Source: Macrostomum lignano (taxonomy: Eukaryota). Taken from it: a stretch of 51,744 bases of DNA. Position 1 is the stretch's first letter, and each line of letters begins with the position of its first letter. Shown here piece by piece: positions 2,633-48,569 of the stretch. The stretch is taken from positions 1-51,744 of the forward strand of contig NIVC01000802.1 of assembly GCA_002269645.1 (NCBI GenBank). Reading direction: 5' to 3'. A program made the position numbers and the translations under genes. A model generated the notes under the pieces. The model had not been told where the DNA came from. It saw only the letters and a program-made list of their open reading frames with translations, and searched no databases.

Positions 2633-5600
2633 TCAGTTTAGAAAACGTTTGTATTTTTCTTCAAGCCATGGCGGTACGTCACCCAGTACCTTGGAACTTC
2701 TTCTCCGCAACATCCTCAGCAGTTGCAGATCTTCGCAACTCTCCACAGCCACAACCAGCTCCTGTTCATCAGCATCTTCTCTTTCCGCAACATCTCGAAT
2801 CCAGTCTCGGGTGATCGCGTCCATCGGCTCTTCTAGCTCTAGTCGGAGAGCATGGAACAGGGCTTCAAAGTTCATGTACTGTAAGCCGATGTAATGCTTA
2901 ACAACTAGAGGAAATACATTGGCAATATTTTTATTTCTAAAAGGAAAAATCGGACGCCGATTAGTGCGAAAGCAAAGCTTCAAAACAGAGTCTTGACTCT
3001 TCAGGTGCTGCAAAACGAACTCCACAGTCGCTTCGCTGGCTGATCTTTCAGCCGGCCAATCAATGCCTCTACTTGCGCTGAAGCCCTTGAGACTTTTCAA
3101 AATATCCGCTGCAGCGTCTCTTTTACCCAACTGAAGGCAAATAATTGCTCTGACAGACTCTCGCGCTGATCGAGCACAGTCTGGGAGCTTGTCAATCAAA
3201 TCCATGAGAGACTCTGCATTGCCGTCCACAGCTGGCAGACGACGCATGGCTTCCAACAGCACGTCATAAATCTCATGGTACTCGCACTTGGTGGCGCTTG
3301 AAACACGCGTGCTATGATGAGCTGGAAGTAGCGAAAGAATTAGGAATGGATTGAAGTAAAATCGACCGAATTCATTGATTGGTTGCAGACTGTCCTTGAA
3401 ATAAATTAGCAGCTCAGGCAGCCTAGCGACAATGTCCTTCGCTGCACTTGATGCTTGGTGCAGTGATTCCCGCACACTGTCGGCTGAGTTTGGGTCCGCG
3501 CCTTTTAGGTAGACAGCTGCATCGCTCAAGAAGAAGTGGTCCATAATCCGACAATCCAAATAGCCTGACCTACAGGCGTTCTCAACACTGTCAATCAAAA
3601 TCTGCAGCGAACGTCTCGTGAGATTCACCAGGTTCTCTGATTTCCACTGATCAGGTGGCGTCTCTTCTAGCATACGGAACGTGATTGTCTTTGCATGATA
3701 CGTCCTGAAGCCATTGTGGCAGATTGCCTTTTTGAGTAGCCACTTCAGAATGACAAACATTTGACCCTGTAGAGTGGTCAGATTTCGTAACAGCCGCCTC
3801 TCAAGGAAGCTGGTGCTCACTCGAAGCTGCTCACCGGCCTTACCAGGGGGAGCTGCGTGCACTATGTGACAGGGTGACGAGGCTGAAGTAACATCGCGCT
3901 GGATCGACTGCAGCACGGCTGGGAAGATGTTGGACTTCGCAACTCTGTCTGGCTGCAGTGGAGCAATAGGCGGGTAGCGGCAGAGGCGATGCGCCGGCAC
4001 CTCGTCCAAAGTCGGCCTCTGGTTGAACCCCAGATATGAGCGGGCTGGATTCGACGCTGAAATTTTTGGATTGTACTGCTTAGGTATGTATGCTTGTATG
4101 TATGCTTGTCTGATTAATGCTCTATTTCAAAACAATGTAGTAGCGGAGAAAGTGACATCAGCACTCTTACCAAATCCAGAGCACAAAATGTGCCCCTTGC
4201 AGTACTCTACTGTCCGCTCACTTCTGTCAGCGCACTCGCAAAAGTCTTTCAGGTGAAAGGGTTTTCCATGAGTGAGCCACATCACATCAACGTCAGAGTC
4301 GAAGTCAGTTCTGCCATCCAGAGTGACCAGGCTGTTGCCCCAGCCTTCAGCGAAGCTGCCTACGACAAAGTACTCGTCCGTATGATATCTTTTAAAAAGA
4401 ATATCTTGAAGAAAATCTGCGGTCGAGCTTTGAAAAACAGCACGGGATTGCACGAAACCCGATTTAGACAGGGCTAAGTGAAGCAGCTGGCTTAGTTCCT
4501 CATCACTGTGCGTCTGTCTGTAGGATGAAAGCAGTGGTAATATATGTTTCACATGCGCTCGAAAATCGGGCGTTAAGATAAAGAATTTTAAGTCAGTAGC
4601 TCGTAGATGACATGCAGTTTGCACATCGACAAACATCCAGCGAGGGGAAAGTAACTATGGACGTTCCTCGGACGGCACCTAAGCACGAGCACGCGCGAAT
4701 ATGTACTCAGGCACACACGCAGAGCTGTATATCTGCTCTCAGCATCGTCTGTATGTGTATTCTGAAGCTTGAGGGTCGGTCCACATGAGTGAAAATCGCA
4801 CGAGCCTTCAGGCCAGCACCTGAGTCCTGAACCTGCGTAATATGGCCCATGCTGCGTGATGTAACCCAAGAAGTGAGCGCGAGGGTTGGATTCATTCTCC
4901 CTCCCAGCTACCCAAAAGTGATCAAATTAGCTATCGAAAATGCAGCACTTACTTTTCAACGTTTATTCCAGAGTCATCCAGTGACGTGGCAGCATGAAAC
5001 AGTTCCACAACACGGTCATTCTCAAACTCTTCGGCACATCTCAGACCCTGTTTTAAATAGCTGGCTTGAATGCCATTACGAATGCAGAACTCGATAATTA
5101 ACTTGACAGTCTGATAGTGATTGTTTTGTGAAGCAATATCTAAAGGTGTCTTTCCTGCGCCATTTGCACTGGTGACATCGGCTTGGGCTTTCAAGAGAGA
5201 CTCGACTACTTGGTAATGCCCTTGCTGACACGCTGCGAATATCGGTGAGCAGCCTTTAGAATCTTGAAGATTTACGTCAGCTTTTCCTCTGATTAGTGAG
5301 TTCACCACCTTTAGATAACCCTGCTCTGAAGCGATGTATAGGGGCGAAAACCCATCAAAATCCTGAAGGTCGACATCAGCTTGTGCTTTAATGAGCAATT
5401 CTACTGCTTGATACCGATCCTCAAGCGAGGCAACGTACAGTGGCGTGGAGCCGATCACTGTTTGAAGATTTACTTCAGCTTGCGCTCTGACTAGCGACTC
5501 AATAACCTTGCAATGACCCTCCTGCGCCGCCATGTAAAGAGGAGAACAATAGGCAAGATCAATATCGGCTTGGGCTTTTATGAGAAGCTTAGCCACTTGA

Positions 5601-5976
5601 TGATGACCGTGCTGCGATGCTGCAAAAAGAGATGATTTTCCCTCACGTGTTTGAAGATTGACATCGACTTGTGCATGAATTAGTAGCTCGACAATTGAAA
5701 AAAAGCCTTGGTATGAAGCTAGATACAAAGCTGAGATGCCGTCGCTGTTTTGCCTATCCAAATCCACCTTTGCTTCAATTAATATGATGAGGAGATCTGT
5801 CCTTTCTAAGTCGCATGCAATCATTGCCGGCGTAAAATGTTTACCTTTATACACAATAAATGGTCAACACATTTTCCGCCAGAAATAATACTTTGAACAG
5901 CGCCCGAGTTGTTAGAGGCCAGAGCTGAAATCAACTCATCTTCCGTGGGCTCTGCCGAAGGTTCGTTGCCCGGCAT
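2633..5976 (-). CDS. Ankyrin-repeat + Mab-21/cGAS-like nucleotidyltransferase (cGLR-type), 3 exons
   Basis: Exon 1 is 5976/5824..4953 (about 8 ANK repeats of the GxSPLYxAxxxGHxxVVxxLI type), with donor GTAAGT at 4952. Exon 2 is 4517..4171 (acceptor ctacag; VVGSFAEG...DFDSDVDVM NTase motif), with donor GTAAG at 4170. Exon 3 is 4056..2633 (acceptor tttcag; TLDEVPA third acid, QLRVSTSFLERRLL, TYHAKTITF and HFF Mab-21 motifs). Splice phases 2 and 1 join in frame. The product is 880 aa from ATG 5824, or 931 aa from ATG 5976 if a 1-nt frameshift near 5860 is corrected. Confidence 0.88.
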
Positions 5977-9271: not shown

Positions 9272-10163
9272 AGCAGTGTATATTTGGGTGCAGCTATGAA
9301 ACTATGCGATCATTTCTATGGTAAAGCCTAGTTAGTGCGGCTTTATAAAAACTGCAGAATTCACTTGAAAGAAAATTTGTACACTCGCACTGAAATCGAA
9401 TATCTATGGCAGAGAATGGAAGGATTCTTGAACACTAACGAGTGCGAGACTTTGTCCATGGTAAAAATTCACTTAAGTAACATTAGCTAATCTTAAAGGA
9501 ACGAGTTTTTCATTCCTGCACGACCAGACAAATTTATTTTTAGACACAACATATTAACATGAAAGAAGATAAACATCAAAGCGACGAGACAAACGAAGAG
9601 CAAACAGTTAATGAGTCTACACTCAAATCATTCTCAAACTCCACTCGAAAATGAACTGCACAGCATTTGGTTTCGTCAAGCGTGCACATGGTTTCCGGAT
9701 CCGAGCTGACAAGTTACTCTAATTCTTAGTCAAACATGAAATCCACAACCGATCCAGCCTTCATCGCTCGCCTTCTCAAATTTGCTTTAAGCAGCTTCGA
9801 TAAACAATTCTTCTTCACTAGATCCACACACTGTTGCGTTGCGCATATCAATTAGTGGAGGACTCTGAGACAAGTCGATTACAGATGCGATCGTTGAAGC
9901 TAAGTTGAGCTTTATAACATTGCCTATAGACTGTCCGTGGTCAAAAGACAATGATCTTTGGCAAACCGTGCGTCTATGACAAAATGCACTCGTTTTTCGT
10001 GCGCAGGATTGTGGGATTGCGCAACTGTCCATGGTTTAAAGAAATGAAAAGAGTACAGAGAAAACGTCAATGATGTCGATGCACTGCCTTCAATTGCATT
10101 ATATTTCAATTATTCGTATATAGCCATACCAGAACTTACATTGAAAACTAACAGAAACAACAT

Positions 10164-10523
10164 GGGGCCGTAGCCCAGTGGTCAAGTGTGGTGCTCTGAT
10201 GTGCCAGCGGCCCAGGCTCGATTCCAAGTGCAGTCACATTAATTTGGGGCTAAATTGGAATCTCGGCTTGGGTCAGCTCATGCAATTAACGCACGACGCC
10301 CCCAAGCTCCAAGGCACAGTGAATGAAGTGTACATTCCTAATGATAAAAAAGTTAGGGCCGCTGTACACTCCTATGTGAGTGTGTGCCTGTGCATATCCG
10401 CACGCTTGTGTGCCTGCTCAGGGGAGTCAGCGGAATGGGCAGCAATGCCGCTCGCCGGTTGGGTGACAATGTCGCTTAAAGTGCGCCAGGGTGCACACAG
10501 CCCCCAGCCTTTAACTAAAACAA
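10164..10523 (+). mobile_element. tRNA-derived SINE, copy 1
   Basis: Pol III A box TAGCCCAGTGG (10171-10181), B box GGCTCGATTCC (10215-10225) and an A-rich tail. Flanking direct repeat AAACAACAT at 10155-10163 and 10524-10532. A homologous copy lies at 33223-33581. Confidence 0.85.
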
Positions 10524-11348
10524 AAACAACATAAAATTCGGCTCAGTAGTCGGTTCTCAAAATTAGAAAAATTAATTTGTTAAAAATGCTCTACCAACAC
10601 AGCACAGCGGAACGCGGCGTTGCATATGATTAAAATACCTGATAGGAGCTCAGTAGTAGAAAAATGGTACGGTCTGCCGCACGTCGCTGATTGGCTGGGG
10701 CAGGCCGCAGGTGGGGTGGGGTAGGCCAGAGGCGGGGTGCGGCAGGATAGAGGGGGTCGAGCAGGCTGGGGGTGAGGTGAGGTAGGATGGAAGAAGGATG
10801 GGGCAGCCCAGAGGTGGGGTTGGACAGGAGGGGTGGGGAAAGCCAGAGGAGGGGTCAGGCAGGTGAGTGTCTGGAAGTGGGTGAGTGTCCATGGGTTGAG
10901 TGTCATTCACCCGTGTGTGGTGAGGGGTTTCAATGTGGTTTCAATGTGATTGGTCGGAAAGGGGCATGTGGTTCGCAACTGCATAGAGGTGCCGATGACT
11001 TGGAATTTCCGAGTAGTGGAAGGGCCTACGGAAGGGTTCGATTTCTGAGTAGAGAGGGGTTTCTATTGGTTGGCAGGCTTTGGTATCAGGGGTTCGGAGT
11101 CGGACCCAACGCGGAAGGGCTCTATATAAACAAAGTACCCGAGGCTCCTTGTGTTCATACAATTTTTTTGATAAAATCATGCGTTTAGCAAACAGTGGAA
11201 TGTCTGTCTTGCAACGAAAGGATTGCCAACAGCAATCACTTTATGCTGACCGAACCCTCTCGTCCGACCTGGGGTTTACCGAAGTGAAGACAGTGCCACA
11301 GCGGTATGGCAACCAGTCAGCTAAATTATAATCAAGCGCAGGCCGCGG

Positions 11349-12704
11349 TTGCTGTTCCGCCCGAACTTCACCCAGTACTCGGGCTACCTGACCTCCAGCA
11401 GCGGCAGCGGCGGCAGCCGGCGCCTCTTCTACTGGCTGGTCGAGAGCTCCCACGTGGACGCCTCGACGGCTCCTCTCGTGCTGTGGATGAACGGCTCCTC
11501 GGTCGGCGGCCTGCTCATGACGAACGGGCCGTTCCTGGCGAACGACCGCGCCGAGCTGGAGCGCAACGACTTCGCGTGGAACCGGCTGGCCAACGTGCTG
11601 TACATCGACTCGCCCAGCGGTGTCGGCCTGAGCGAGCCCGGACCCACCGACCCGACCGAGCTCAACGATAACGCGACCACGCGGCTGAACCTGGGAGCGC
11701 TGCTCCACTTCTACAGCCTGTTCCCCGAGTACCGAGGCCGGGCCTTCTACATCGCGGGAGAGAGCTACGCGGGATCTACATCCCGCTGCTGGCCAGCGCC
11801 ATCATCGACGGCGGGCACCGTCCCGGCCTCATCAACCTGAAGGGCATCGCCGTGGGCAACGGCCTGCACATGCCGTACAATGACTCGGTCTTTGAATCGC
11901 ACCGCAGAGCCCTGACGGACGCAATGGGCATCAGCTACTCGTACAGAGGGTCCAGTGTCATGAAGACGGTATCAAAGTTTCTATCATCTGTTCAAATTTG
12001 TTTGCATGCTTCAGAACAAACAGCGCACCATGCCGCAATATACATGTATTCTCCTGAAGGACTCCCGCCGAGTGAACCCGTACAACATCGCCCAGCGGTG
12101 CTACAGCGACGGGCAGCTGGACAACTATCTCTACCTAAACTCCACGGGTCTCACGAGCTTCTTGAACGACGCTGACGCTCGAGTAGCTCTTGGCGTCAAC
12201 GAAAATTTTGCTGTGAATTTTACCATCTGCAACGACACATTGTTTAGTGAGTATATCCAGTCTGTGCGAGACGTCCTGGGTGAGTTTCAGAGCCTAGCGA
12301 ATCACAACGTGCCGGTGCTGTTGTACACCGGAGTCCTGGACTACATGCTGCCCGTGGGGTTGACGCTGCAGCTGCTGGAGCGGCTGCCCCCGGACCCAGT
12401 CAGCCGTCAGGACCCCTGGTTCTGGTGTCTGAGAAAGCCGGGCTACGGACTGCAGATCGGAGGCATCCAGAGGTCCTACCTGGGTGGCCGAATCAGGTAC
12501 CGGACGATGATTGGCACCGGACACTTCGTGGCGACGGACCGGCCGGAGATCGGGCTGCAGCTGGTGCAGGACCTGCTGACTGCGGGACTTGGGCACTCGA
12601 CAACTGAGAGCTGCATTGCCACCGCTGCTTCAGTTGACTGGGACTCAAATTTGGGTTGGCGATTTGCCGGGTTAAATTTTTACGATTGTTCTGCTGCCTG
12701 TTAG
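11349..12704 (+). pseudogene. Serine carboxypeptidase (peptidase S10, cathepsin A/CPVL-like), frameshifted
   Basis: Motifs PNFTQYSGYL, PLVLWMNG, FAWNRLANVLYIDSPSGVGLS, GESYAG (Ser), GVLDYM (Asp) and GTGHFV (His). A 1-nt deletion at 11771-11773 interrupts GESYAG-IYIPLLASAI...INLKGIAVGNG. A 46-bp intron at 11969-12014 is phase 0. The true 5' end was not located, and the gene could be intact if the indel is an assembly error. Confidence 0.8.
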
Positions 12705-13299: not shown

Positions 13300-15783
13300 A
13301 TGTCGGCCGGGAAGGCCATGGCGGCGGCCATCGCTGACAGCAGCGCGCACGGCATCAGCCGGGCTGTGGGCGCCCGCTCGACGACTTTGAAGGTGATGTG
13401 GACAGTCCTGTTCCTGCTGTTCCTCGCCCTGTGCTGCAAGAGCGCCTCCACGCTCATCAGCAGGCTCATCAACATCACCGTGGTGCGGACTTACGAGTCT
13501 GACAAGGTGCCGTTCGAGTTTCCGGACATCTACTTCTGCCCGAGCCTCATCTACTCTGGCAGCATACCCTACACTCTCAAGGAGGCCGAGGCCAAGGTGG
13601 TTAATGATGAAGTTGAGAGGCTGAGCCGGCTATATGACAGGCTGTACTGCAGCAAGAGCGCGGAATTCTGCACCCACGGAGAGAAGGCCACATTTCGCCG
13701 GGTGTCCCGGATCCAGCTGTCCATGCCGGTGCACATCCTCAACCGCTACCTGCTGCAGCAGGAGAACCAGTCCTTCCTCACCTGGCCCTACGTTCGCTAC
13801 CAGTCTTACAGCACCAGCAGCAGGTACGCCGCCAGGACTGTCTTCATCCACCCCGACAACCGGATCTGCTACAAGATCTCGGTGTCCGCGGAGAGCCTGG
13901 AGAGCCTCAGCTACAAGCGATCCGTCCTGCTCTCCTGGCTTCTTGTCGATCCGCACTATTCCGATTTCACCTTCACCGGAGTGGAGGTAAAGCCCATTGT
14001 GAACCGGTTCCTCAACAAGAGCGTCCCGTTCCAGAACTGGCAGTCCATAGACGGCTACCACAGCATCACCAGCCTGGGTTACACCCTGCAGGTGGTGCCC
14101 AGAGGCACTTATCCATCTCTGATGCACGAAGCCAAGCTGGGCCTGGCCGCCGGCAGGTCCTACCACGTCTCCATCGACATGGAGGAGACAGTCCACAGCC
14201 ACGAGCTCAACGGCAAGTACTGCAACCCCAAGCAGGAAGTTGCTATCTTTCAGAACCAGCTAACCGGCGAAAGGCAGGAGTTCAAGAGCAGCCCAGCGTC
14301 TTGCTTCTACACTCAGATGAACCTCCTGCTGCAGAAGGAGTTCCAATTTGTGTTCTCTCTGTACCCGAAGCCGTGGAGCCAGAGAGACGTGCCCAGGTTT
14401 GAGAACATGACGGAGATCGAGATGACGAAGGCCGCCATCGAGAATGTCTCCCTGTACGACGTGAGGAAGTTCATCGACATCCACACTCAGCACATCACCG
14501 ACTATTGCAAGAAGGAACAGCCGTGTGAGTTCACTGAGTACAGCGCGACCTCGACGTCTGTGAAGTGGCCACGGGCGAGCAGAGCTCTGGCCGACTTCCT
14601 TGTCAACGAATACCCCGACTGGTACACCGACATGGGCCGGCCCGCCACCCGCAGGCTGGTGGATCTGTCGAGGCAAATCCAGTCCGGTGAGTTGTGCTCA
14701 TGCTCTAGACTGAGGCAAATCCAGTTCGGTGAGTTGTTCTCATGCTCTAGACTAAGGCAAATCCAGTCCGGTGAGTTGTTCTCATGCTCTAGACTGAGGC
14801 AAATCCAGTCTGGTGAGTTGTGCTCATGCTATAGATTGAGGCAAATCCAGTCCGGTGAGTTGTGCTCATGCTCTAGACTGAGGCAAATCCAGTCCGGTGA
14901 GTTGTTCTCATGCTCTAGACTGAGGCAAATCCAGTTCGGTAAGTTGTTCTCATGCTCTAGACTGAGGCAAATCCAGTTCGGTGAGTTGTTCTCATGCTCT
15001 AGACTGAGGCAAATCCAGTTCGGTGAGTTGTGCTCATGCTCTAGACTGAGGCAAATCCAGTTCGGTGAGTTGTTCTCATGCTCTAGACTGAGGCAAATCC
15101 AGTTCGGTGAGTTGTTCTCATGCTCTAGACTGAGGCAAATCCAGTTCGGTGAGTTGTGCTCATGCTCTAGACTGAGGCAAATCCAGTTCGGTGAGTTGTT
15201 CTCATGCTCTAGACTGAGGCAAATCCAGTTCGGTGAGTTGTTCTCATGCTCTAGACTGAGGCAAATCCAGTTCGGTGAGTTGTTCTCATGCTCTAGACTG
15301 AGGCAAATCAAGACTACCATCAAGGCATCTCTAGGCTCCTGAATCTCTCAGATTGAGTCAGTTTCGTCAGCTTAAGAGCACAACTCAGAGAGTAGGTTCA
15401 CCCTGAGCAGCCGTTGCTTTGCTTTAACCGCAGATAATCACTCCAGCCACACCGAGTCAATGTTCCGGCACTACGTCACCGAGGCCATGATCGAGGTGTA
15501 CATCTCCGTGAAGAGCCATCGGTCATCGAGGATTGTCATCGCCTACTCCTACTCGTGGGTGGCCTTCCTGGCTGACATCGGCGGCCTCCTTGGCCTGTAC
15601 ATCGGCTGCAGCCTGCTGACCCTGTGCGAGCTGCTGGAGCTGGCCTACCACCTGGTGAACGGCGCGGTGGCAGCGCGAAGGACCGCCAAAAGCCGGAGAT
15701 GCAACTCTGTGGAGATCCCGGAGGGCCGGCAGCGGCAGGCGGAAAGCGCGGCCCCGGATGTGGGAGCGGCTGAACGCGTTTGA
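13300..15783 (+). CDS. DEG/ENaC (amiloride-sensitive sodium channel family) subunit, 2 exons
   Basis: Exon 1 (13300..14686) has the pre-TM1 HG motif (SSAHGI), TM1 VMWTVLFLLFLALCC and FPDIYFCP. Intron 14687..15433 is GTGAGT...ccgcag, phase 1. Exon 2 (15434..15783) has TM2 FLADIGGLLGLYIGCSLLTLCELLE with the GxS filter. Confidence 0.9.
14670..15309. repeat. 42-bp tandem array spanning the DEG/ENaC exon-intron junction
   Basis: Unit GAGGCAAATCCAGT(C/T)CG|GTGAGTTGT(G/T)CTCATGCTCTAGACT, 15 full copies plus one partial. Confidence 0.95.
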
Positions 15784-16225
15784 TGAGGCCGCATCGATTC
15801 AATGACAGCTTCTAATGAGTAAAACAGTTCTCATTTCATGCTGGAAAATTTTAGTTAATCAGTAGCAAACAGACTGCTTAGTGGTCCTTGACTGCATGGC
15901 ATATCCGATCTCAGAGTATTACACAACCTACGTGATTCTCGCTTTTTAAATCAGCTCTCATGCTACGAGCAAGATTATCTCCCTAATCCTGAGCACGTGA
16001 TCTCCGCTGCCGGAGACAGAGTGCTCGGAGTCTCCAAAAAATCGCTTTACTGAAACCTCAGCTCTCAGAGTTCCCGGAGGTATGCAGATTTAATCTCGCA
16101 TAGGATTCCCTCATCTCGGTGTGCTGCTGCTTGCATTAATTAATAAAGACATTGTCAAGCATCGCACACTCGGCAGACTTCTCTTGGAGCTCTATTTTTC
16201 CTGCTCAAACACTGGCTGTTGCGAC

Positions 16226-16357
16226 AGAGGGACAGGCAGACAGACAGACAGACAGGCAGACAGACAGACAGACAGACGAACACCAAGACAGCCAGACAGA
16301 CACTAAGACAGGCAGACAAACAGACAGACAAACACCAAGACAGCCAGACAGACACTA

Positions 16358-16392
<35 letters not shown>

Positions 16393-16445
16393 CACCAAGA
16401 CAGGCAGACAGACATACAGACACTAAGACAGACAGACAGACACTA

Positions 16446-16511
<66 letters not shown>

Positions 16512-16513
16512 GC

Positions 16514-16571
<58 letters not shown>

Positions 16572-16573
16572 GC

Positions 16574-16638
<65 letters not shown>

Positions 16639-16641
16639 GCC

Positions 16642-16697
<56 letters not shown>
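16226..16697. repeat. (AGAC)n microsatellite
   Basis: Long AGAC tetranucleotide run with interruptions. Confidence 0.97.
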
Positions 16698-16700
<3 letters not shown>

Positions 16701-20707: not shown

Positions 20708-21658
20708 TGGTAGCTTCTGGTAACTTACTAGTAAACTGGTCGCTTGAAGTAACTAGTAAACTGGTAGCTTTGGGTAACTAGTAAACTGGTAGCTTTGGGT
20801 AACTAGTAAACTGGTGGCTTTGAGTAACTAGTAAACTGGTGGCTTTGAGTAACTAGTAAACTGGTGGCTTTGAGTAACTAGTAATCTATTAGCTTTGAGT
20901 AACTAGTAAACTATTAGCTTTGAGTAACTAGTAAACTATTAATCTAAAGTTAACTAGTTAGTAATCTATTAGCTTTGAGTAACTAGTAAACTGGTAGCTT
21001 TGAGTAACTAGTAAACTGGTAGCTTTGGGTAACTAGTAATCTATTAGCTTTGAGTAACTAGTAATCTATTAGCTTTGAGTAACTAGTAATCTATTAGCTT
21101 TGAGTAACTAGTAATCTATTAGCTTTGAGTAACTAGTAAACTATTAGCTTTGAGTAACTAGTAAACTATTAGCTTTGAGTAACTAGTAAACTATTAGCTT
21201 TGAGTAACTAGTAAACTGGTAGCGGTAGCTTTGAGTAACTAGTAAACTATTAGCTTTGAGTAACTAGTAAACTATTAGCTTTGAGTAACTAGTAAACTAT
21301 TAGCTTTGAGTAACTATTAAACTGGTAGCTTTGAGTAACTAGTAATCTATTAGCTTTGAGTAACTAGTAAACTATTAGCTTTGAGTAACTAGTAAACTAT
21401 CAGCTTGGAGTAACTAGTAATCTATTAGCTTTGAGTAACTAGTAATCTATTAGCTTTGAGTAACTAGTAATCTATTAGCTTTGAGTAACTAGTACACTAT
21501 TAGCTTTGAGTAACTAGTAAACTATCAGCTTGGAGTAACTAGTAAACTATTAGCTTTGAGTAACTAGTAAACTGGTAGCGGTAGCTTTGAGTAACTAGTA
21601 AACCGGTAGCGGTAGCTTTGAGTAACTAGTAAACTATTAGCTTGGAGTAACAAGTAAA
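20708..21658. repeat. Minisatellite, 25-bp unit TAGCTTTGAGTAACTAGTAAACTAT
   Basis: Over 30 tandem copies with variant subtypes (CTGG vs CTAT). Confidence 0.95.
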
Positions 21659-22189
21659 CTGGCATCAGCCAAGCCGCCAGCTGCCAATAAATCATAGCGT
21701 GGCAGAGACGCGGACAAAACCAAGACAGCAAGCACTGAGAAACCCGGGCTAGCCGGATAGAAGCGAAATTCAATGCAATCGGAAAAAAACAAAAAGAAAA
21801 TTTAAAAGCAAATTCGCGGGTTCGAGCCCGTCAGTCTCAACTACTGCTAATATACTACTAATAAACAGCATAAACTACCAAAACTAATAAGGTAACACAA
21901 CGGAAACGCGGTAGGAGGTCGCGCTACAGAAAAGCTGCGCGAATAAAAATGATCGCAAAGTATTCCACTGCCCATCAGAAAGTTTATCAATGTACATTAT
22001 GAGATTAATATAATTAACATTTGCCAAACCCGCCCAGTCTGAAACTTGTCAAAAATGCCAACATATGCAGGTCATGTTATATGTACAACTCATTGCTGAT
22101 CAAGCAGGCTCTCAGGGAATGAGAATGTCATGTTGGGGAAGTCAGTGATTCGATGTTGGGGGGATGAGAGCAGGTCCCGGACAGGCCGG

Positions 22190-32600: not shown

Positions 32601-33222
32601 TTTATTATTTATCCCTTGCATAGCCAAAAAATAGCCCCTAGTGCTAAAGCCTCTGGTGCAAAAGCCCATTGTGCTAAAGCCCCTTGTGTTGAAGCCCCTT
32701 GTATTCATTTAAAATTTAATTAGTAATAATATTATTAAATTAGTACTACTAATATTTTTATGATACTTGGCCTAATATATGACCAATAATTATTTTGATG
32801 CATTTTGAAGGTTGTATATCACTGATTTGTCCAAAAACTTTTGTTAGAAGGTCATTATGTATAGCTTTGATTGCCTAGCTAATGCTAATACCTATTTTAT
32901 TAAAGATTTAAATGTCTTACCTAAAAACAAATTGATCTAGTCTAATTCCAAGTAGGATTAGAATCCATAGTTATAAATCATAGTCTAGAAGGTGGCCTTT
33001 ATGCCAGAAAATAATGGTTAAATATAGATTGTAAATGTAAGCATTGGAGTTGGCTTAAATGTCTATTGCAAAGAAATGACACATTTTAACTTATATGTTT
33101 TAACTGCAGTTTGTATAATATACTTGAAGAGTTTTTGACTATTTTAAGGATTGTATTAATAATAACAGGGGTAACACTAGTGATATATATAAGGGGTCTA
33201 TCAACTTAAGCTTATATGCCTA

Positions 33223-33581
33223 TTTTTTTTATTAGAGGCAGGGGGTTGTGTGCACCCTGGCGCACTTTAAGCGACATAGGCACACAACCAGTGAGAGGCA
33301 TTACTGCCCATTCCGCCGACTCCCCTGAGCAGGCATAAAGCGCGTGGATACATACTCAGGCACACACACACAGGAGTGTACAGCGGCCCTAACTTTATAT
33401 TATTGTTAGGCATGTACACTTCACTGCGCCTTGGGGGGTTGGCTCTCAAGGCCGTTAATTGCACGAGCAGAGCCAAGCCGAGATTCCAATTCAGCCCCAA
33501 ATTAATGTGACTGCACTTGGAATCGAGCCTGGGTCGCTGGCACACCAGAGCAGCTGCGCTACGGCTGGGCTACAGCCCCCT
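33223..33581 (-). mobile_element. tRNA-derived SINE, copy 2
   Basis: Reverse-strand homolog of 10164-10523 with B box GGCTCGATTCC and poly(A) tail. Perfect 13-bp TSD GCTTATATGCCTA at 33210-33222 and 33582-33594. Confidence 0.9.
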
Positions 33582-33680
33582 GCTTATATGCCTAGGATAC
33601 TTAAAAAATTATTGATGCCTTATTTTGCAGGTTAATTTAAACTTAGTTCTAATAAATTAAGCCATGCAATAGCATTTCTC

Positions 33681-36151
33681 ATGGCAAGATTATATGATTT
33701 AATAAATCAGCACCTGCCCAGTAACCAGAACTATACAAAGATCATAGGTTTTGCCCACTGCGACCCTACCATTCATGTCATGAATGGCAAGGATACAGTT
33801 GATCGGGGCAAGTCGAAAACCCTTGGCCCGATGAAGCTGTCAGAGTCTGGATCGGCTGCAGGGCCAAATAGCCAGCAGCAGCTGTCCCAGGTGGGCGCCT
33901 CATCATCGGCCTACCTGACTCAGGATAATGTAAATCTGGAGGCCACACAAAAGTACATCAAGATCCTGGAGGACAAGATTCGCGAGTACAGGCGCAACCT
34001 GGTGGATGAGCAGATGCACAGGGAGTCACAGACCTCCAAGGCCATTGAGGAGTTGAATAAGTTCGGCCAGGACTCAACCAAGCAGGAGCAGACGAAGCGG
34101 CGGCTGCAGCGGGAGCAGGGCGAGTTCACCACCAGGACGCAGAACATTCAGAAGAATATCCAGAAACTCGAGTTCAAGCTCAACGAGCTGAAGGCTCACG
34201 GAATTCCAAAGCAGGTGTGTGATTTACTGGCCTGGCTGAGGTAGCCAGTTTGAGTAAATTTAGTTGCTTGGGACAGGCTGAGAGTCAAGTACTTTGAGTT
34301 GTTGGGTTTTGAGTAGTTTAAGCTGTTGGGATTCGAGTAGTTTGAGTTGCTAGCTAAGGAAAGGCTGGGATTCGAGTAGTTTGAGTTGCTAGGGAAAGAC
34401 TGGGATTCGAGTAGTTTGAGTTGCTAAGGAAAGGCTGGGATTCGAGTAGTTTGAGTTGCTAAGGAAAGGCTGGGATTCGAGTAATTGAAGATTTTCAGCT
34501 CATCACCTCCGCCGCACCCGCCAGGTGGTGCCAGACGACTACGTGCGCCAGCTGAAGAAAAAAGACGCCAAGAAGCACCGCCTGCTGCAAATGCCCAACC
34601 TGCTGAAGGCCAAGACGGCCTCATCCGGCGACCTGCTGGTTGGCGGCGCGGCGGCGGCCAGCGTTCCAGCAGGCGGCGGCAGCGGCGGGCCCGGCAGCGT
34701 CAGCAGGGTCGGCATCGAGCGGCCGAGCGTCGGCAGCCCACAGAAGAAGTCTCAGTCGCTGGAGCACGGAGCCGCTCCGCCGCCGCCGCTTTTCTCGCAG
34801 CAGCAGCAGCAGCAGTCGGGGGCGGAGTCGGTGCTCACCGTGTCCTCGTCGGAGGTGCCGAACACTGGCAAGAAGACCAGCCTGTCTGACGAAGAGGCCA
34901 GCCGGCTCGGGCAGAAGGCCGGCGGCAGCGGCCCGCCAGTCACCTTCGGCCTGGGCGTCACCGGCGGCGGCGGTCCCCGGTCCACCACCAGCCGCTCCTA
35001 CCGGCCGCCCAAGAGCCGCGCCTCGTCCTCCGTCAGCAGCGAGTCCGCCCGCTTCTTGTCGGCCAGCGAGGCGGCCGCTGCGGCTGCTGCTGCCGCCGCG
35101 TCCACGTCTCCCGCTGCCCCGGCTGTCAGCTGCGATCAAACCGAGTCCTTGCGCGAGCACTTCGAGCACCTGCTGCAGGAGCAGCGGCGGGCCCTCACCG
35201 AGGAGCTGGACGTTGTGCGCAACCGACTGCAGGATGAAGCTGGCGATATTCACAAGCTGGTGGACTCGGAAATCCATAAGCTGAGATATGACCAGCAGGT
35301 AATTGGTCGGCCCAGCCAGTGAATGAAATGACTGAGTCAGTGAATCAGATGAATGAGTCAGAAAATAGGATGACTTAGTCAGTGAATGTGTTGAAGGAGT
35401 CGGTGAGTGCAGTGCAAGCACCCCTTGCCCACACGCCATACATGCGCAACCTTGGGAATCACTCGGCCGTTTCTATTGGCAACACACACATGTAAGTCGC
35501 TATTGGACGCAGCCTGGACGCAGCCAATAGCGACTTACATGTGTGTGGTGCCAATAGAAACGGCCGGGTGAGTCTCTAGGTTGCGCCCAAGCATGCACGC
35601 CCCCCCCCCCAATCCAGGAGCTGTCGGCCAGCCTGGACGACAACCAAAAGGAGCTGGAGAAGATGAAGGTGTTCCTCACCAACCTGTCCAAGGAGTTCAA
35701 CAAGCTGATGCTGGTCGACCAGCAGATTGACGACATCAACAACAAGATCGCCGTGCTGTCCCGCGACCTCCAAGGCCCCGGCGCCTGCCCGCACGGCCGG
35801 CCGGACTCGGCCGCCACCACCGGCACTCGGATGCTGAACCTGCTGGTGGCGCTGCTGTCCTACGGCTTCGTTGCAGCCTCTTGCCTCATCAACCTGCTGC
35901 TGTGGCTGCTGGGCTTCCTACGCAGCCGGCCGTTCGTCATCGTCTGCGTTGCCGCGCTGCTGCTGGCGCTGCTGGCGCTGCTGTTCCGCCAGTGGCCCGC
36001 GCTGGCGCCTCTGCTAACGCCCGACGGTCTGGCGGCCGCCGTAGCGCGCGGCTCGCCGCAGGCTGTGCGCCGATTTTTGTCAGATTTGGCGCTGGCGCTG
36101 AATAAACACGACGAGGCTGCGGCGACCGCAGCTACCGCGGATGCGGGCTGA
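33681..36151 (+). CDS. TMCC: Transmembrane and coiled-coil domain protein (TMCC/TEX28 family), 3 exons, ~613 aa
   Basis: Exons 33681..34214, 34525..35298 and 35618..36151, all phase-0 GT-AG. The N-terminal coiled coil (KYIKILEDKIREY...IQKLEFKLNELKAHG) resembles the TMCC coiled coil, followed by a second coiled coil and two C-terminal hydrophobic helices. Confidence 0.75.
34290..34482. repeat. ~35-bp tandem repeat in TMCC intron 1
   Basis: AAAGGCTGGGATTCGAGTAGTTTGAGTTGCTAAGG, about 5 degenerate copies. Confidence 0.85.
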
Positions 36152-36277: not shown

Positions 36278-37360
36278 TGGATTGCTAATCTATTCAATAA
36301 GCCAGAGAATAGAATGGATGGCTAATCTATTCAGTAAGTCAGAATAGAATGGATTGCTAATCTATTCAGTAAGTCAGAATAGAATGGATTGCTAATCTAT
36401 TCAATAAGCCAGAAAATAGAATGGATTGCTAATCTATTCAGTAAGTCAGAATAGAATGGATTGCTAATCTATTCAGTAAGTCAGAATAGAATGGATTGCT
36501 AATCTATTCAGTAAGTCAGAATAGAATGGATTGCTAATCTATTCAATAAGCCAGAGAATAGAATGGATTGCTAATCTATTCAGTAAGTCAGAATAGAATG
36601 GATTGCTAATCTATTCAATAAGCCAGAGAATAGAATGGATTGCTAATCTATTCAGTAAGTCAGAATAGAATGGATTGCTAATCTATTCAGTAAGTCAGAA
36701 TAGAATGGATTGCTAATCTATTCAGTAAGTCAGAATAGAATGGATTGCTAATCTATTCAGTAAGTCAGAATAGAATGGATTGCTAATCTATTCAATAAGC
36801 CAGAGAATAGAATGGATTGCTAATCTATTCAGTAAGTCAGAATAGAATGGATTGCTAATCTATTCAGTAAGTCAGAATAGAATGGATTGCTAATCTATTC
36901 AATAAGCCAGAGAATAGAATGGATTGCTAATCTATTCAGTAAGTCAGAATAGAATGGATTGCTAATCTATTCAATAAGCCAGAGAATAGAATGGATTGCT
37001 AATCTATTCAGTAAGTCAGAATAGAATGGATTGCTAATCTATTCAGTAAGTCAGAATAGAATGGATTGCTAATCTATTCAGTAAGTCAGGATAGAATGGA
37101 TTGCTAATCTATTCAGTAAGTCAGAATAGAATGGATTGCTAATCTATTCAGTAAGTCAGGATAGAATGGATTGCTAATCTATTCAGTAAGTCAGAATAGA
37201 ATGGATTGCTAATCTATTCAGTAAGTCAGGATAGAATGGATTGCTAATCTATTCAGTAAGTCAGAATAGAATGGATTGCTAATCTATTCAGTAAGTCAGA
37301 ATAGAATGGATTGCTAATCTATTCAGTAAGTCAGAATAGAATGGATTGCTAATCTATTCA
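36278..37360. repeat. 35/37-bp minisatellite downstream of TMCC
   Basis: AATAGAATGGATTGCTAATCTATTCAGTAAGTCAG and its variant ...TTCAATAAGCCAGAG, about 30 copies with no spacers. Confidence 0.95.
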
Positions 37361-38280
37361 ATAAAGATCTGGTGGTAGATCATGCGCCTCTCTGACAGTC
37401 ATTCTGTTCACACCAATGCTGCTAGATCGGCAGTATTTAAAGCTACTCGAATGATTCGGCCTTCGCCACTTCCTCTGACCCCCCTGCCTGTCCCCCATTT
37501 CGATCGCGTCTCCACATCTTTCATCTCCTAGAGACTCCTCACGTTTTAATTGTTATTTTTCTGTTTTAAAGTTTTAACCCTCACCAGTAGGAGCACCGGT
37601 CCAGCCAGCCACCTGCATGTCTGCTTCTGTCCGTTTCTTTCTGTCTTCTGTTTTCATTTATTTTTCGCTTAATGCTGCTGCACACATCGTCAGTGACAGA
37701 GAACTGTTGATTGCATGCTGTGCGACTGCGGCAGTAGAATCAAATATTACTAACAGTAGTTATCGATATTTTTCTCTGCCTTACTCGGACGTGGTTAAAC
37801 CGCCAAGTCTGACCGCCTCGCTGCCTGCCGCTCATCCAGAGTTTCACCGACTGCTTCATCCTATAATTATAGATAGACCTAATTAAGTTAATCCTGATCC
37901 CGCTTCCGTTGATTGCTGTTCGGACCTGCCAGACCCGCTACTCACTGTGCTCGCCTCTGCTAATTGTATATCCGCTTATAATTTGGGTTTAGCCTTGTTC
38001 GCCATCATGACACTGATAAGGAGACTGTTCTGTACAAATTCCATACTGTTAAGTGGCATTGTACATTGTACAAATCGGCTTCCGCCTGCCTATCGTGTGC
38101 ACCATGTTTTACCGCCGTCTGTAACAATTAAATCAGTTTCAGATTCTGTCTGAGTAAATCTAATATGCTTTATTGCATCATACATCATTGAATTTGAAAT
38201 TTGCGCAAAGTTTATTGTGTACTTAATTAATGTTGCATGTAGGCTTTCTTGGAGTTCATTTGAGGCGAGGTGTGGGGTCA

Positions 38281-40185: not shown

Positions 40186-41219
40186 ATGCATCCAATCGCT
40201 GCGCTCTTCATCTTGGCTTTCTCAGTCTCTCTGGCAGAAGCCCAGAGCAGCCAGCAGCTGTGCCACACAGCCTTCAGGGAGGTCAGCAGCGGCTCCCTGT
40301 GCATCCGCAGCGCCTTCACCCGCACGCTGCCCGGCATCGCATCGGAGCTGCGGTGCTCCATCGAGTGCGGCGGAGAGCCGAGCTGCCAGGCCTTCACCAT
40401 GGCCGACGGTCCGTGCCAGCTGTTCGTGTTTGACAGGTGCAGCAAGTCGGTGCGGGACTGCGGCTGCTCCCGGAGAGGCCGCCTGTTCGTGAAGCGGCAG
40501 CCGGGACTCGAGCCGGGCGCGCTGTGCCCGCCTGGCTACGCAGACGAGCTGTGCGGAGTGAAGTACCGCCTGATCAACAGCACCGCCACCTGGTCAGCCC
40601 AGAAGCTCAGGTGCGTGGCTGGAATGGGTTGGGCTGAAATGGCACCGCTTCCGTGCGGGTTCGATTCCGCGGTATGGCGGCCTTATCAGTTCGGGGTTCT
40701 CGTAGAATGTTGGCCTGAATTATGTGCAATTGCCACTCATTAGTAAGAGCCAACCCCAAGACGCACAGTGAGCACACTGCCGGAGGATGAAACTCAGGGC
40801 AGAGTTAGACTCGGAGGGTGTTTCCGTGTCCGTATCCATGTGTCAAATGGTAGCAGAAACGTCTCACGGCCTGAACTGCCTGAACTGACAGGTGCGAGTC
40901 GGATTCTGGCCTGGCGATGCTGGCCGATGTCACTAACTCGTCTGAGATGAGCCACGTTGAAGCCATGTACACCGCGCTCAGCCCGGGAGTCGCTGTCTAC
41001 CTGGGCGGCTACCGCGTGTTTCCTGGTGCCGCTCAGACGGACGGCTGGCTCTGGACGGCCTGCAACATCACGGTGGACGATACGCTCTGGGGCTCTGGCG
41101 AGCCCAATTCGTTTGGGGAGAAGGCCACGGCTCGGTACCCGACAGTGCCGAAGCTGGTGGACATCACGGATTCGGGAGCCTACGGCGCCCTCTGCGAGTG
41201 CGTGTCGCCGTTTGATTGA
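40186..41219 (+). CDS. Secreted PAN/apple + C-type lectin domain protein, 2 exons
   Basis: Signal peptide MHPIAALFILAFSVSLAEA and PAN-like CSIECGGEPSCQAF...C. Exon 1 is 40186..40610, the intron is 40611..40891 (phase 2) and exon 2 is 40892..41219. CTL motifs are TWSAQKLRC, VYLGG, WLW, WGSGEPN and ALCEC. Confidence 0.88.
40616..40888 (+). mobile_element. SINE-like element (second family) forming essentially the whole lectin intron
   Basis: A-box-like TGGCTGGAATGG, B box GGTTCGATTCC (40658-40668) and a short tandem 3' tail CTGAACTGCCTGAACTGA. Flanked by direct repeat CAGGTGCG at 40608-40615 and 40889-40896. Confidence 0.7.
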
Positions 41220-46967: not shown

Positions 46968-48569
46968 CTAGGTTTCGCGAACATTTCTCTTTGATCTCTT
47001 TGAGCTCCGAGAAGGTTGCTGCTTTGTTCGCTTCTCCCCTTTTTTTATTGTCCCGCCGCCACTTAGCGCACTCGTCTTGGTTGAGGAGGACTGATCGGTC
47101 CCGCCGCTTCTTAGCGCACTCGTCTCGGTTGAGGAGGACTGATCGGTCCCGCCGCTTCTTAGCGCACTCGTCTCGGTTGAGGAGGACTGATTGGTCCCGC
47201 CGCTTCTTAACGCACTCGTCTCGGTTGAGGAGGACTGATCGGTCCCGCCGCTTCTTAGCGCACTCGTCTCGGTTGAGGAGGACTGATCGGTCCCGCCGCC
47301 ACTTAGCGCACTCGTCTCGGTTGAGGAGGACTGATCGGTCCCGCCGCCACTTAGCGCACTCGTCTTGGTTGAGGAGGACTGATCGGTCCCGCCGCTTCTT
47401 AGCGCACTCGTCTCGGTTGAGGAGGACTGATCGGTCCCGCCGCTTCTTAACGCACTCGTCTCGGTTGAGGAGGACTGATCGGTCCCGCCGCTTCTTAGCG
47501 CACTCGTCTCGGTTGAGGAGGACTGATCGGTCCCGCCGCTTCTTAGCGCACTAGAATCGATCCTTTTCTTTTTCCGGCGGGCATCCAACGAGCAATATTT
47601 GAATGAATTGCGGAAAAGACCGTGTGGTAGAGGATTAGGAGAAGCAGCTGTGAGGAACTGAGTAATTGTCCTCACAATATGACAATTCGCTGGCATACGA
47701 ATTTGCTGCTTCTTGGCCATGCCAGACACGGTAGTCACGCACAATTCCGAGGTCGAAAAAAGGGAACGAATGAGGAGTCTGGTGAGCTTTCGCAACTGCT
47801 TGTCACCCGGCTCGCGACGGAGTTCAGCAACCGCATGCTCAATAGCTGCCTTCTGCTCTCTTGTAATAGTCACGTTCGGGGCGGACGCCAGAAGCGGCAC
47901 TCGTTGGTCTTCTCCCAGAATCTCGGATATGACCTCGATCGATGGGGAAGCGTGAATAGCAGGAGCTACCAAAGCTGGGGTTTGGCTTGTTGCAAGGCTT
48001 TGAGCGGCAAAGTCTTGCATAATCCGAATAACGTTGGATTGAAATTCGGATGATTCGCCAGTCGTTCTGAGACGATCAATTTCTTGGCGCAGGTCATCCA
48101 TCTCAGCATTAGCCACCTCCAAGCGCCTCTGCGTCGACTTGTGCGCATCCACCTCCTTCAGTAGCAAGTCGCGCCTTTCAGATGCTGCCGCTTTGGCGCT
48201 TTGAAGCTCGTTTTTGAGCCTGTCCATCTGCTCCTCGACAACGGCCATCTTTCGGTGCAGCACGCTGCAACTATCGCAATCCAAGTCGATGCAATAAGTT
48301 TCGTCTGGCAATTGACAACACTGCATAGCGCGAGACGCAGCCTCCTTGTTATCGAACGGGCCCTTTAATAGTTCCGCCTGTAGCAGCTGAGGCTTTGTGT
48401 GTCGTGTGTTGTGGGACGATAAGTTCACCAACACTTTCGCGAATTGCTGTGTAGGCGCTGGTGACGGTTTCACAATTCTCCTTACAGATATTGCATAGCA
48501 TTGTCTATTGTTAGTTTCTGTGCCTTGAACTACCCAGAATGGTGGGTTTTCGTAAGACAAGCTTGCCAT
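46968..48569 (-). CDS. Intronless coiled-coil + BEN-like domain protein with 16-aa repeat tail (533 aa)
   Basis: Uninterrupted 1.6-kb ORF with a CxxC followed by a coiled coil (EEQMDRLKNELQ...LRQEIDRLR). The segment LTRLLIRSLFSTSELCVTTVSG...IVRTITQF...KYCSLDARRK resembles a BEN domain. About 10 copies of ALRSGGTDQSSSTETS follow, then a basic C-terminus. Confidence 0.7.
   Translation of the reverse strand: MASLSYENPPFWVVQGTETNNRQCYAISVRRIVKPSPAPTQQFAKVLVNLSSHNTRHTKPQLLQAELLKGPFDNKEAASRAMQCCQLPDETYCIDLDCDSCSVLHRKMAVVEEQMDRLKNELQSAKAAASERRDLLLKEVDAHKSTQRRLEVANAEMDDLRQEIDRLRTTGESSEFQSNVIRIMQDFAAQSLATSQTPALVAPAIHASPSIEVISEILGEDQRVPLLASAPNVTITREQKAAIEHAVAELRREPGDKQLRKLTRLLIRSLFSTSELCVTTVSGMAKKQQIRMPANCHIVRTITQFLTAASPNPLPHGLFRNSFKYCSLDARRKKKRIDSSALRSGGTDQSSSTETSALRSGGTDQSSSTETSALRSGGTDQSSSTETSALRSGGTDQSSSTKTSALSGGGTDQSSSTETSALSGGGTDQSSSTETSALRSGGTDQSSSTETSALRSGGTNQSSSTETSALRSGGTDQSSSTETSALRSGGTDQSSSTKTSALSGGGTIKKGEKRTKQQPSRSSKRSKRNVRET
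47052..47552. repeat. 48-bp coding tandem repeat
   Basis: About 10.4 in-frame copies within the 533-aa ORF. Confidence 0.95.

Follow-up and report, generated by a model that had tools for sequence, protein, structure and literature searches.

New introns in Daphnia are reported to have short flanking direct repeats and to recur at nearby sites. In mammals, short interspersed nuclear elements (SINEs) such as Alu, B2, and MIR reside in introns as passengers. Tandem duplication of an exon segment that contains AGGT is another described route to an intron with AGGT at both ends. Finally, introners are a published class of elements that recruit both splice sites from the target-site duplication (TSD) or from the neighboring exon and leave the messenger RNA (mRNA) unchanged, and about 5% of the classified introner families derive from non-LTR (non-long-terminal-repeat) retroelements (Gozashti et al. 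2022, PMC9860276; 2025, PMC12130899). Here we consider an intron of a lectin gene in genomic DNA of the flatworm Macrostomum lignano, which is flanked by an 8-bp direct repeat and which a first-pass annotation of the sequence attributed to the insertion of a SINE-like element. The gene lies in a stretch of 51,744 nt (contig NIVC01000802.1), which we call the window. We compared it to two other loci: L003 (NIVC01001858.1), which carries the lectin paralog P0010 (PAA63283.1, annotated on GCA_002269645.1), and L004, which carries the lectin paralog PAA58610.1. The window and these two loci amount to 87 kb of the ~760-Mb genome.

In the reading that we favor, the lectin intron is an ordinary spliceosomal intron, and an old copy of an abundant SINE makes up about three-quarters of it. 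The gene (40186–41219, forward strand) encodes a secreted, PAN-like/C-type-lectin-like protein. Exon 1 (40186–40610, identified from its open reading frame [ORF] and translation) encodes the signal peptide and the cysteine-rich N-terminal half, and it ends with ...CTC AG. Exon 2 (40892–41219) begins with G TGC GAG, encodes the lectin-domain part from the conserved cysteine, and ends with a TGA stop codon at 41217–41219. The only intron of the coding region lies between them (40611–40891, forward strand). This is a GT-AG intron of 281 nt (GTGCGT...CTGACAG) in phase 2, and it splits an AGG codon. Stop codons are met if the intron is read through, and splicing yields an ORF of 250 amino acids that reads ...AQKLR|CESDSG... 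at the junction. The spliced protein is 100% identical over 232 amino acids to UniRef entry A0A1I8HHC9, and A0A1I8J208 differs from it by a single residue; both entries are from M. lignano and carry the name C-type lectin domain-containing protein. A Pfam search with the spliced protein gave no family at E ≤ 1. Single-base details should be viewed with caution, as one conserved gene or more in the window assembly is broken by a frameshift.

The direct repeat is CAGGTGCG. Its first copy (40608–40615, forward strand) spans the donor and its second copy (40889–40896, forward strand) spans the acceptor, and each reads CAG|GTGCG across the splice site. The match is exact and cannot be extended; the flanking bases differ at both sides. 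The GTGCG of the second copy encodes part of Arg-Cys-Glu, and the cysteine and the acidic residue encoded there are conserved among homologues. An exhaustive profile search added more homologues, P0010 among them. Homologues whose ORFs are uninterrupted at this site align to the spliced junction colinearly and without gaps, and the sequence of the lectin site in its uninterrupted form would be CTCAGGTGCGAG. We therefore agree with three statements of the first-pass annotation: the intron is bracketed by an 8-bp direct repeat, the two splice sites are in register with the copies of that repeat, and splicing restores the coding sequence exactly, with no insertion or deletion relative to the uninterrupted homologues.

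Most of the intron can be assigned to a SINE family. The copy in the lectin intron (40656–40868, forward strand, in sense orientation) is old and degenerate: it covers family positions ~49–295 of 358 at ~64% identity, with several indels that include a gap of ~26 nt. Its B box, GGTTCGATTCC (40658–40668, forward strand), is homologous to the family's GGCTCGATTCC at position 51/52. Local alignment of the lectin intron to the intron of P0010 in L003 scored 238, as compared to 102.5 ± 14.4 for shuffled sequences (z ~9.4). Using nhmmer, the lectin intron matched two other copies of the family with E = 3.5e-7 and 3.8e-7, and the real intron scored 25.0 bits against the other copies, as compared to at most 4.8 bits for the shuffled intron. 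When a hidden Markov model (HMM) of the family was built without the lectin copy, HMM positions 49–252 matched 40656–40838 with 33.4 bits. (This match was present when we searched a 501-nt region and absent when we searched the whole sequence, which we judged to be a quirk of how the search tool handles windows.) Also, the motif GGTTCGANNCC is found twice in the window, as compared to 0.18 expected occurrences.

Standard detectors did not identify the element. ARAGORN with default settings and Rfam, whether at the gathering threshold or at E ≤ 10, gave no match in the lectin intron, and ARAGORN made a call only at -ps70, a setting that yields 206 calls per 51.7 kb, so the call is noise. The head of an intact copy also had no Rfam match at E ≤ 10 and an ARAGORN call only at the relaxed setting of -ps80. 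Because the intact head fails both tests too, these tests are not informative as to whether the sequence is a SINE. The label "tRNA-derived" is based only on the positions of the boxes. When we compared the lectin intron to the window with blastn, all of the other SINE copies were missed; these were found only by profile methods.

To define the family, we built a search model from just the sequences of the lectin intron and the P0010 intron, and it found four further copies: three in the window (33293–33536, reverse strand, 195 bits; 10208–10455, forward strand, 153 bits; and 4664–4866, reverse strand, 32 bits) and one in L004 (15320–15467, reverse strand, 36.5 bits). Complete members of the family measure ~358 nt; their A box is at position 8 and their B box at position 51/52, and they have an A-rich tail. 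Two of the copies in the window are full-length. The copy at 10164–10523 (forward strand), which begins with GGGGCCGTAGCCCAGTGG, matches the A box perfectly (TAGCCCAGTGG, position 8) and carries the B box GGCTCGATTCC at position 52. Its 3' end is an A-rich tail, and a 9-bp TSD (AAACAACAT) borders the copy at 10155–10163 and 10524–10532. The copy at 33222–33579 (reverse strand) is built in the same way and has a TSD of 12 bp (AGGCATATAAGC, at 33582–33593 and 33210–33221). These two copies are 87.7% identical to each other and neither contains a TTTT run. Both were inserted, with TSDs of their own, at A-rich targets in non-coding sequence. A third copy in the window (4587–4897, reverse strand) is old: it is 67.5% identical to the reference over positions 12–318, with a TTAAAA-type end. 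It lies in a candidate intron of 435 nt (4518–4952, reverse strand, GTAAGT...CTACAG), leaving ~36 nt on the donor side and ~70 nt on the acceptor side. This intron, which we identified from ORF continuity only, would join an ankyrin-repeat ORF (4949–5854) to the ORF at 4127–4636, and the SINE within it is sense-oriented. The copy in L003 (5677–6023) is 91.4% identical to the copy at 33222–33579 over positions 20–358 and is found within a 600-nt intron, 229 nt away from the donor. In L004, the copy (15320–15464) is in a Ras-like gene, where it lies within an intron and neighbors a minisatellite. Overall, there are at least six copies in 87 kb, including partial ones. In the published repeat annotation, SINEs account for 0.39% of the M. 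lignano genome, and our counts suggest that this family is more common than that figure implies.

Elsewhere in the window, at 21819–21829, there is a B-box-like motif, GGTTCGAGCCC, with a short flanking stem, which follows an A-rich stretch. It is not similar to the SINE family and resembles an orphan 3' fragment of a tRNA.

If the insertion of a SINE had created the lectin intron, then the ends of the element should correspond to the repeat, so we compared the ends of the lectin copy to the intact copies. Past position 295, the intact copies continue for ~63 nt and end in the A-rich tail, and the lectin intron has 23 nt left. At least 42 nt of the 3' end of the SINE, and the A tail, are absent from the lectin copy. 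The final 23 nt of the intron are not similar to family positions 296–345 (p = 0.7) and include no A run; most of this segment is a tandem repeat (GCCTGAACT x 2.1, 40869–40887, forward strand, with a score of 38 from Tandem Repeats Finder) that is unique in the window. Older members of the family had the same 3' end, because the equally diverged copy at 4587–4897 still reaches position 318. As judged from these alignments, the end of the SINE does not appear to coincide with the repeat on the 3' side. A possible microhomology between CCAGGGTGC in the SINE (position 320) and CAGGTGCG at the acceptor was not significant (p = 0.7). On the 5' side, the first 45 nt of the intron (40611–40655, forward strand) fit in length with the missing 48-nt head of the SINE. 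These 45 nt had no significant similarity to SINE heads (p = 0.18–0.5), and most 45-nt windows of the proven body of the element were likewise non-significant, so the comparison has little power at this divergence. The A-box candidate TGGCTGGAATGG at 40616 does not fit TRGYNNANNNGG. Intact copies have ~9 nt more before the B box than there are between the first repeat and the B box of the lectin intron. We also considered whether the head might reach into exon 1, where AGCCCAG resembles an A box, but this raises the score by just 5 points and the sequence is conserved coding sequence, so we attribute the resemblance to chance.

These comparisons give a mixed picture of the other claims of the first-pass annotation. 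It had described a SINE-like element with an A box, a B box, and a tandem 3' tail: the interior of the intron is indeed a copy of a SINE family and the B box is genuine, but the A box does not fit and the tandem 9-mer is not the tail of the family. Among the signs that it had named as speaking against its reading were that the sequence is single-copy or that other copies run past the repeat boundaries. The sequence is repeated in the window, L003, and L004; other copies do run past the boundaries, as they have the ~63 nt beyond position 295. Its central proposal was a retroposon-derived intron. The interior is derived from a retroposon, but the evidence does not extend to the creation of the intron, as the 3' terminus is absent and the 5' head is unrecognizable. 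For the same reason, the lectin intron departs from introners, in which the termini of the element and its duplication form the ends of the intron. The geometry of the lectin intron and the restored mRNA do resemble introners. However, introner families are defined by many copies that coincide with introns, and here none of the five other copies in the 87 kb matches intron boundaries; nor does the lectin copy have the termini of its family. The suggestion that this is an intron-generating family thus finds no support, and M. lignano was scored as negative for introners (Macrostomum_lignano, ie = 0, in Supplementary Table 4 of Gozashti et al. 2022, PMC9860276).

Several other origins can be set aside. 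The lectin intron has no terminal inverted repeats and its predicted RNA fold is no more stable than those of shuffled sequences (z = 0.10), so we rejected an origin from a miniature inverted-repeat transposable element (MITE) or hairpin. Tandem duplication of an AGGT-containing exon segment would account for AGGT at both ends of the intron, but blastn found no similarity between the intron and its flanking exons. The intron was not copied from the exon next to it, and we rejected this explanation as well. Six-frame translations of the intron had no match among 5.8 billion proteins, and exact-word scans of metagenome contigs (two) gave no match.

Close paralogs of the lectin in M. lignano include A0A1I8HBZ5 (84% identical), A0A1I8HTM9, and A0A1I8GTV8. 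Among the homologues of the lectin gene, the layout of introns varies. In P0010 (34% identical), the sole intron (L003 5448–6047, GTGAGT...CTGCAG) is in phase 0 and lies 5 nt upstream of the lectin position. It has no in-register repeat, and it contains a young copy of the SINE (91% identity) in the same orientation as in the lectin intron. An intron in this region of the gene is thus not unique to the lectin copy. P0075 (29% identical, genomic) lacks an intron at the lectin site; the one that it has follows the signal peptide. P0004, on contig L001 (from SRR24204725), is 51% identical and its ORF has no interruption at all. We sought a conserved promoter as proof that L001 is genomic, but the alignment of the upstream region was not significant. 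P0007, on contig L002 (from Logan, SRR31628392), is 43% identical and is uninterrupted at the lectin site. The P0007 ORF lacks a start codon and a signal peptide, and stop codons and the acceptor-like ttgccctgctgcgcag lie just upstream of it (L002 1–45), which suggests that L002 may be a genomic contig with an upstream intron like that of PAA58610.1. In PAA58610.1 itself, the first intron (L004 10098–11583) has the same ~30-nt minisatellite (TGTGTGACTGATGCCTGTCACAGCAGCAGT-like) at both ends.

How surprising is the repeat? Within the window, AGGT-containing direct repeats of at least 8 bp that are separated by up to 1.5 kb number 29 on the forward strand and 21 on the reverse strand, and the 701 bp around the intron contain four further perfect 8-mers and one 10-mer. 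Taken alone, the 8-mer pair is unremarkable; what is unusual is that it matches both splice sites in register. Shorter in-register repeats are seen at two introns of a neighboring gene, which we identified from ORF continuity: CAGGTG|CAGGTG (6 bp) at 34215–34524 and CAGG (4 bp) at 35299–35617. In-register repeats of the CAG|GT type arise easily in this window. Furthermore, CAGGTGC is present three times in the lectin gene because AGG-TGC encodes Arg-Cys twice. The 10-bp direct repeat TGACAGGTGC (40431–40440 and 40886–40895) links the interior of exon 1, at codons for Asp-Arg-Cys, to the acceptor; it is not a duplication, because 58 conserved codons lie between its copies. The GT at 40437, if used as a donor, would remove 58 codons and keep the frame.

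The explanation we favor, to which we give about an even chance of being correct, is that a short intron was already there, that the old SINE in it is a passenger, and that the repeat is coincidental. A SINE, or a 5'-truncated copy of one, would have landed in an intron of ~70 nt, later deletions would have removed its 3' end and A tail, and the two copies of CAGGTGCG would not be a TSD. We infer that the intron predates the arrival of the SINE. Without the SINE, the lectin intron would consist of 45 + 23 nt, which is similar to the short introns in the window, such as those of ~70 nt in a carboxypeptidase gene. The other genic copies (in L003, in L004, and in the candidate intron at 4518–4952) are passengers. 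As in the passenger SINEs of mammals, this is a tRNA-type, A-tailed family with A and B boxes and variable TSDs, sense copies are found in introns of several genes, and the old copies are truncated and ~35% diverged. Target-primed reverse transcription starts at the 3' tail, and fresh insertions are never 3'-truncated. This implies that the downstream CAGGTGCG did not abut the end of the element; the alternative is a later loss of at least 42 nt that halted shortly before the acceptor. Also, the supposed target in the lectin gene is GC-rich, as compared to the A-rich targets of the two intact insertions. A coincidental repeat is made more likely by the AGG-TGC (Arg-Cys) codon pair and by the fact that both splice sites follow the CAG|GT consensus.

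Other observations weigh against a passenger. The ORFs of P0004 and P0007, which are closer to the lectin gene than P0010 is, are uninterrupted at the lectin site, as is that of P0075. If L001 and L002 are genomic, then the intron is lineage-specific, a mechanism for its gain is needed, and the odds that an insertion made it are raised. The parts of the lectin and P0010 introns outside of the SINEs have no similarity. From the first base of the intron to the B box there are 48 nt, as compared to 51–52 nt in the intact copies, so a full-length head would begin within ~4 nt of the donor, as expected for insertion into an exon. In contrast to typical passengers, the lectin copy fills nearly the whole intron, and an in-register 8-bp repeat is not expected of a passenger. 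From the frequencies of splice-site sequences in the window and general knowledge, we estimate that an in-register 8-mer would be found in ~1–5 of 1,000 introns. We also made a rough scan of ~130 GT-AG pseudo-introns connecting long ORFs; in-register repeats of at least 8 were seen in just two, namely the lectin intron and one that lies within a tandem array. Nevertheless, published gene and intron numbers put the total for M. lignano at some 250,000 introns, and at the estimated rate there would be hundreds of in-register cases across the genome.

That an old insertion of the SINE made the intron, with the duplication providing both splice sites, seems to us possible but rather doubtful, whether the element retroposed and then lost its 3' end or was captured as a fragment at a staggered break. 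Of the two routes, retroposition is unlikely but the more probable. The SINE would have inserted into the continuous exon ...CTC AGG TGC GAG... with an 8-bp TSD, CAGGTGCG, that yielded an AG|GT donor and a CAG|G acceptor; the 3' end and the A tail would have been deleted later and the head would have eroded. This would explain why the repeat is exact and in register and why the frame is restored exactly. The lectin copy is in the sense orientation and lacks a TTTT run, the distance from the donor to the B box is close to the length of the family's head, and the TSDs of 9–12 bp in the family make one of 8 bp plausible. Most positions of the repeat are constrained by coding or splicing, which could have preserved it for a long time. 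The absence of the intron from P0004, P0007, and P0075 fits as well, and introners derived from non-LTR elements, and splice sites recruited from a duplication, are documented elsewhere. But retroposition must assume a deletion of at least 42 nt that ended right before the essential CAG, and it must accept a head that cannot be recognized and a GC-rich target that is unlike those of the two intact insertions. In none of the other copies does the element coincide with an intron, and M. lignano is negative for introners. Finally, the divergence of ~36% points to an old event, which should be common to many of the paralogs. The other route, which we regard as quite improbable, begins with a double-strand break with staggered ends in the exon: the filler captured there would have been a piece of SINE DNA or complementary DNA (cDNA) that lacked both ends, and fill-in of 8-nt overhangs would have produced the CAGGTGCG repeat, with AGGT there by chance. 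Capture accounts for an in-register repeat around a piece of SINE that is truncated at both ends, and it requires neither an A tail nor an A-rich target. As in the Daphnia introns that are attributed to break repair, there is a short in-register repeat and a foreign filler, and a related gene (P0010) has its intron just a few nucleotides from this position, which fits a local hotspot. Unlike in Daphnia, no presence/absence polymorphism or dated gain is known for the lectin locus. Furthermore, M. lignano offers no independent sign of such events, the 45-nt and 23-nt ends of the intron are not accounted for, and at a single locus the expected pattern is the same as for a passenger.

The proximity of the two introns raises the question of whether they are the same intron. 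An intron that was ancestral to the lectin gene and P0010 might have shifted by 5 nt, from phase 0 to phase 2, in one lineage, with separate SINE passengers arriving later. Each gene has one coding intron and these are 5 nt apart in an ungapped W-x6-C stretch; we estimate that two independent introns would lie this close by chance ~1.4% of the time. However, exon 1 ends in CTCAG, and these 5 nt do not resemble the former start of an intron; moreover, a slide of 5 nt with a change of phase amounts to two coordinated shifts. Intron slides of this kind are considered rare. The non-SINE parts of the two introns are unrelated, and the closer homologues P0004 and P0007 have no intron at the site, if their contigs are genomic. 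We consider this the least probable of the explanations, and very improbable. A stronger version, in which shared ancestry with the P0010 intron is visible as similarity at the level of synonymous sites, is ruled out because the L003 copy is a young member of the family and the flanks are dissimilar; the two introns are similar because they contain the same repeat family.

The window has a few other features of note. In the serine carboxypeptidase gene (Pfam Peptidase_S10), there is a one-base frame shift at about 11765–11775, in the conserved GESYAG(I)YIP motif, which reflects either an indel error in the long-read assembly or a pseudogene. A near-perfect inverted repeat at 35455–35575, with arms of ~45 bp (ccgtttctattggcaacacacacatgtaagtcgctattgg ... 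ccaatagcgacttacatgtgtgtggtgccaatagaaacgg), lies within the inferred intron at 35299–35617 and looks like a hairpin or a MITE. Minisatellite arrays are very dense in the window, with units of 19–60 nt and up to 37 copies; examples are at 36278–37364, 20727–21660, 14670–15309, 47050–47552, and 16223–16698. The arrays at 14670–15309 and 47050–47552 are within long ORFs and translate as in-frame peptide repeats.

If the insertion did make the intron, this would be a rare case in an animal of a SINE that turned coding sequence into an intron, with its TSD providing both splice sites, and of the gain of a retroposon-derived intron in a flatworm whose genome was scored as introner-negative. The P0010 intron, which is 5 nt away and contains the same SINE, would in that case point to parallel intron gain at a local hotspot. 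The lectin family, with its four layouts (an intron near the N-terminus, at the lectin site, or 5 nt away, or no intron), would lend itself well to studies of intron turnover. If instead the SINE is a passenger, as we judge to be more likely, then the locus is ordinary, and it is a caution that the protosplice consensus and AGG-TGC codon pairs can mimic an AGGT duplication. Either way, a SINE family of ~358 nt that is dense in M. lignano is now defined.

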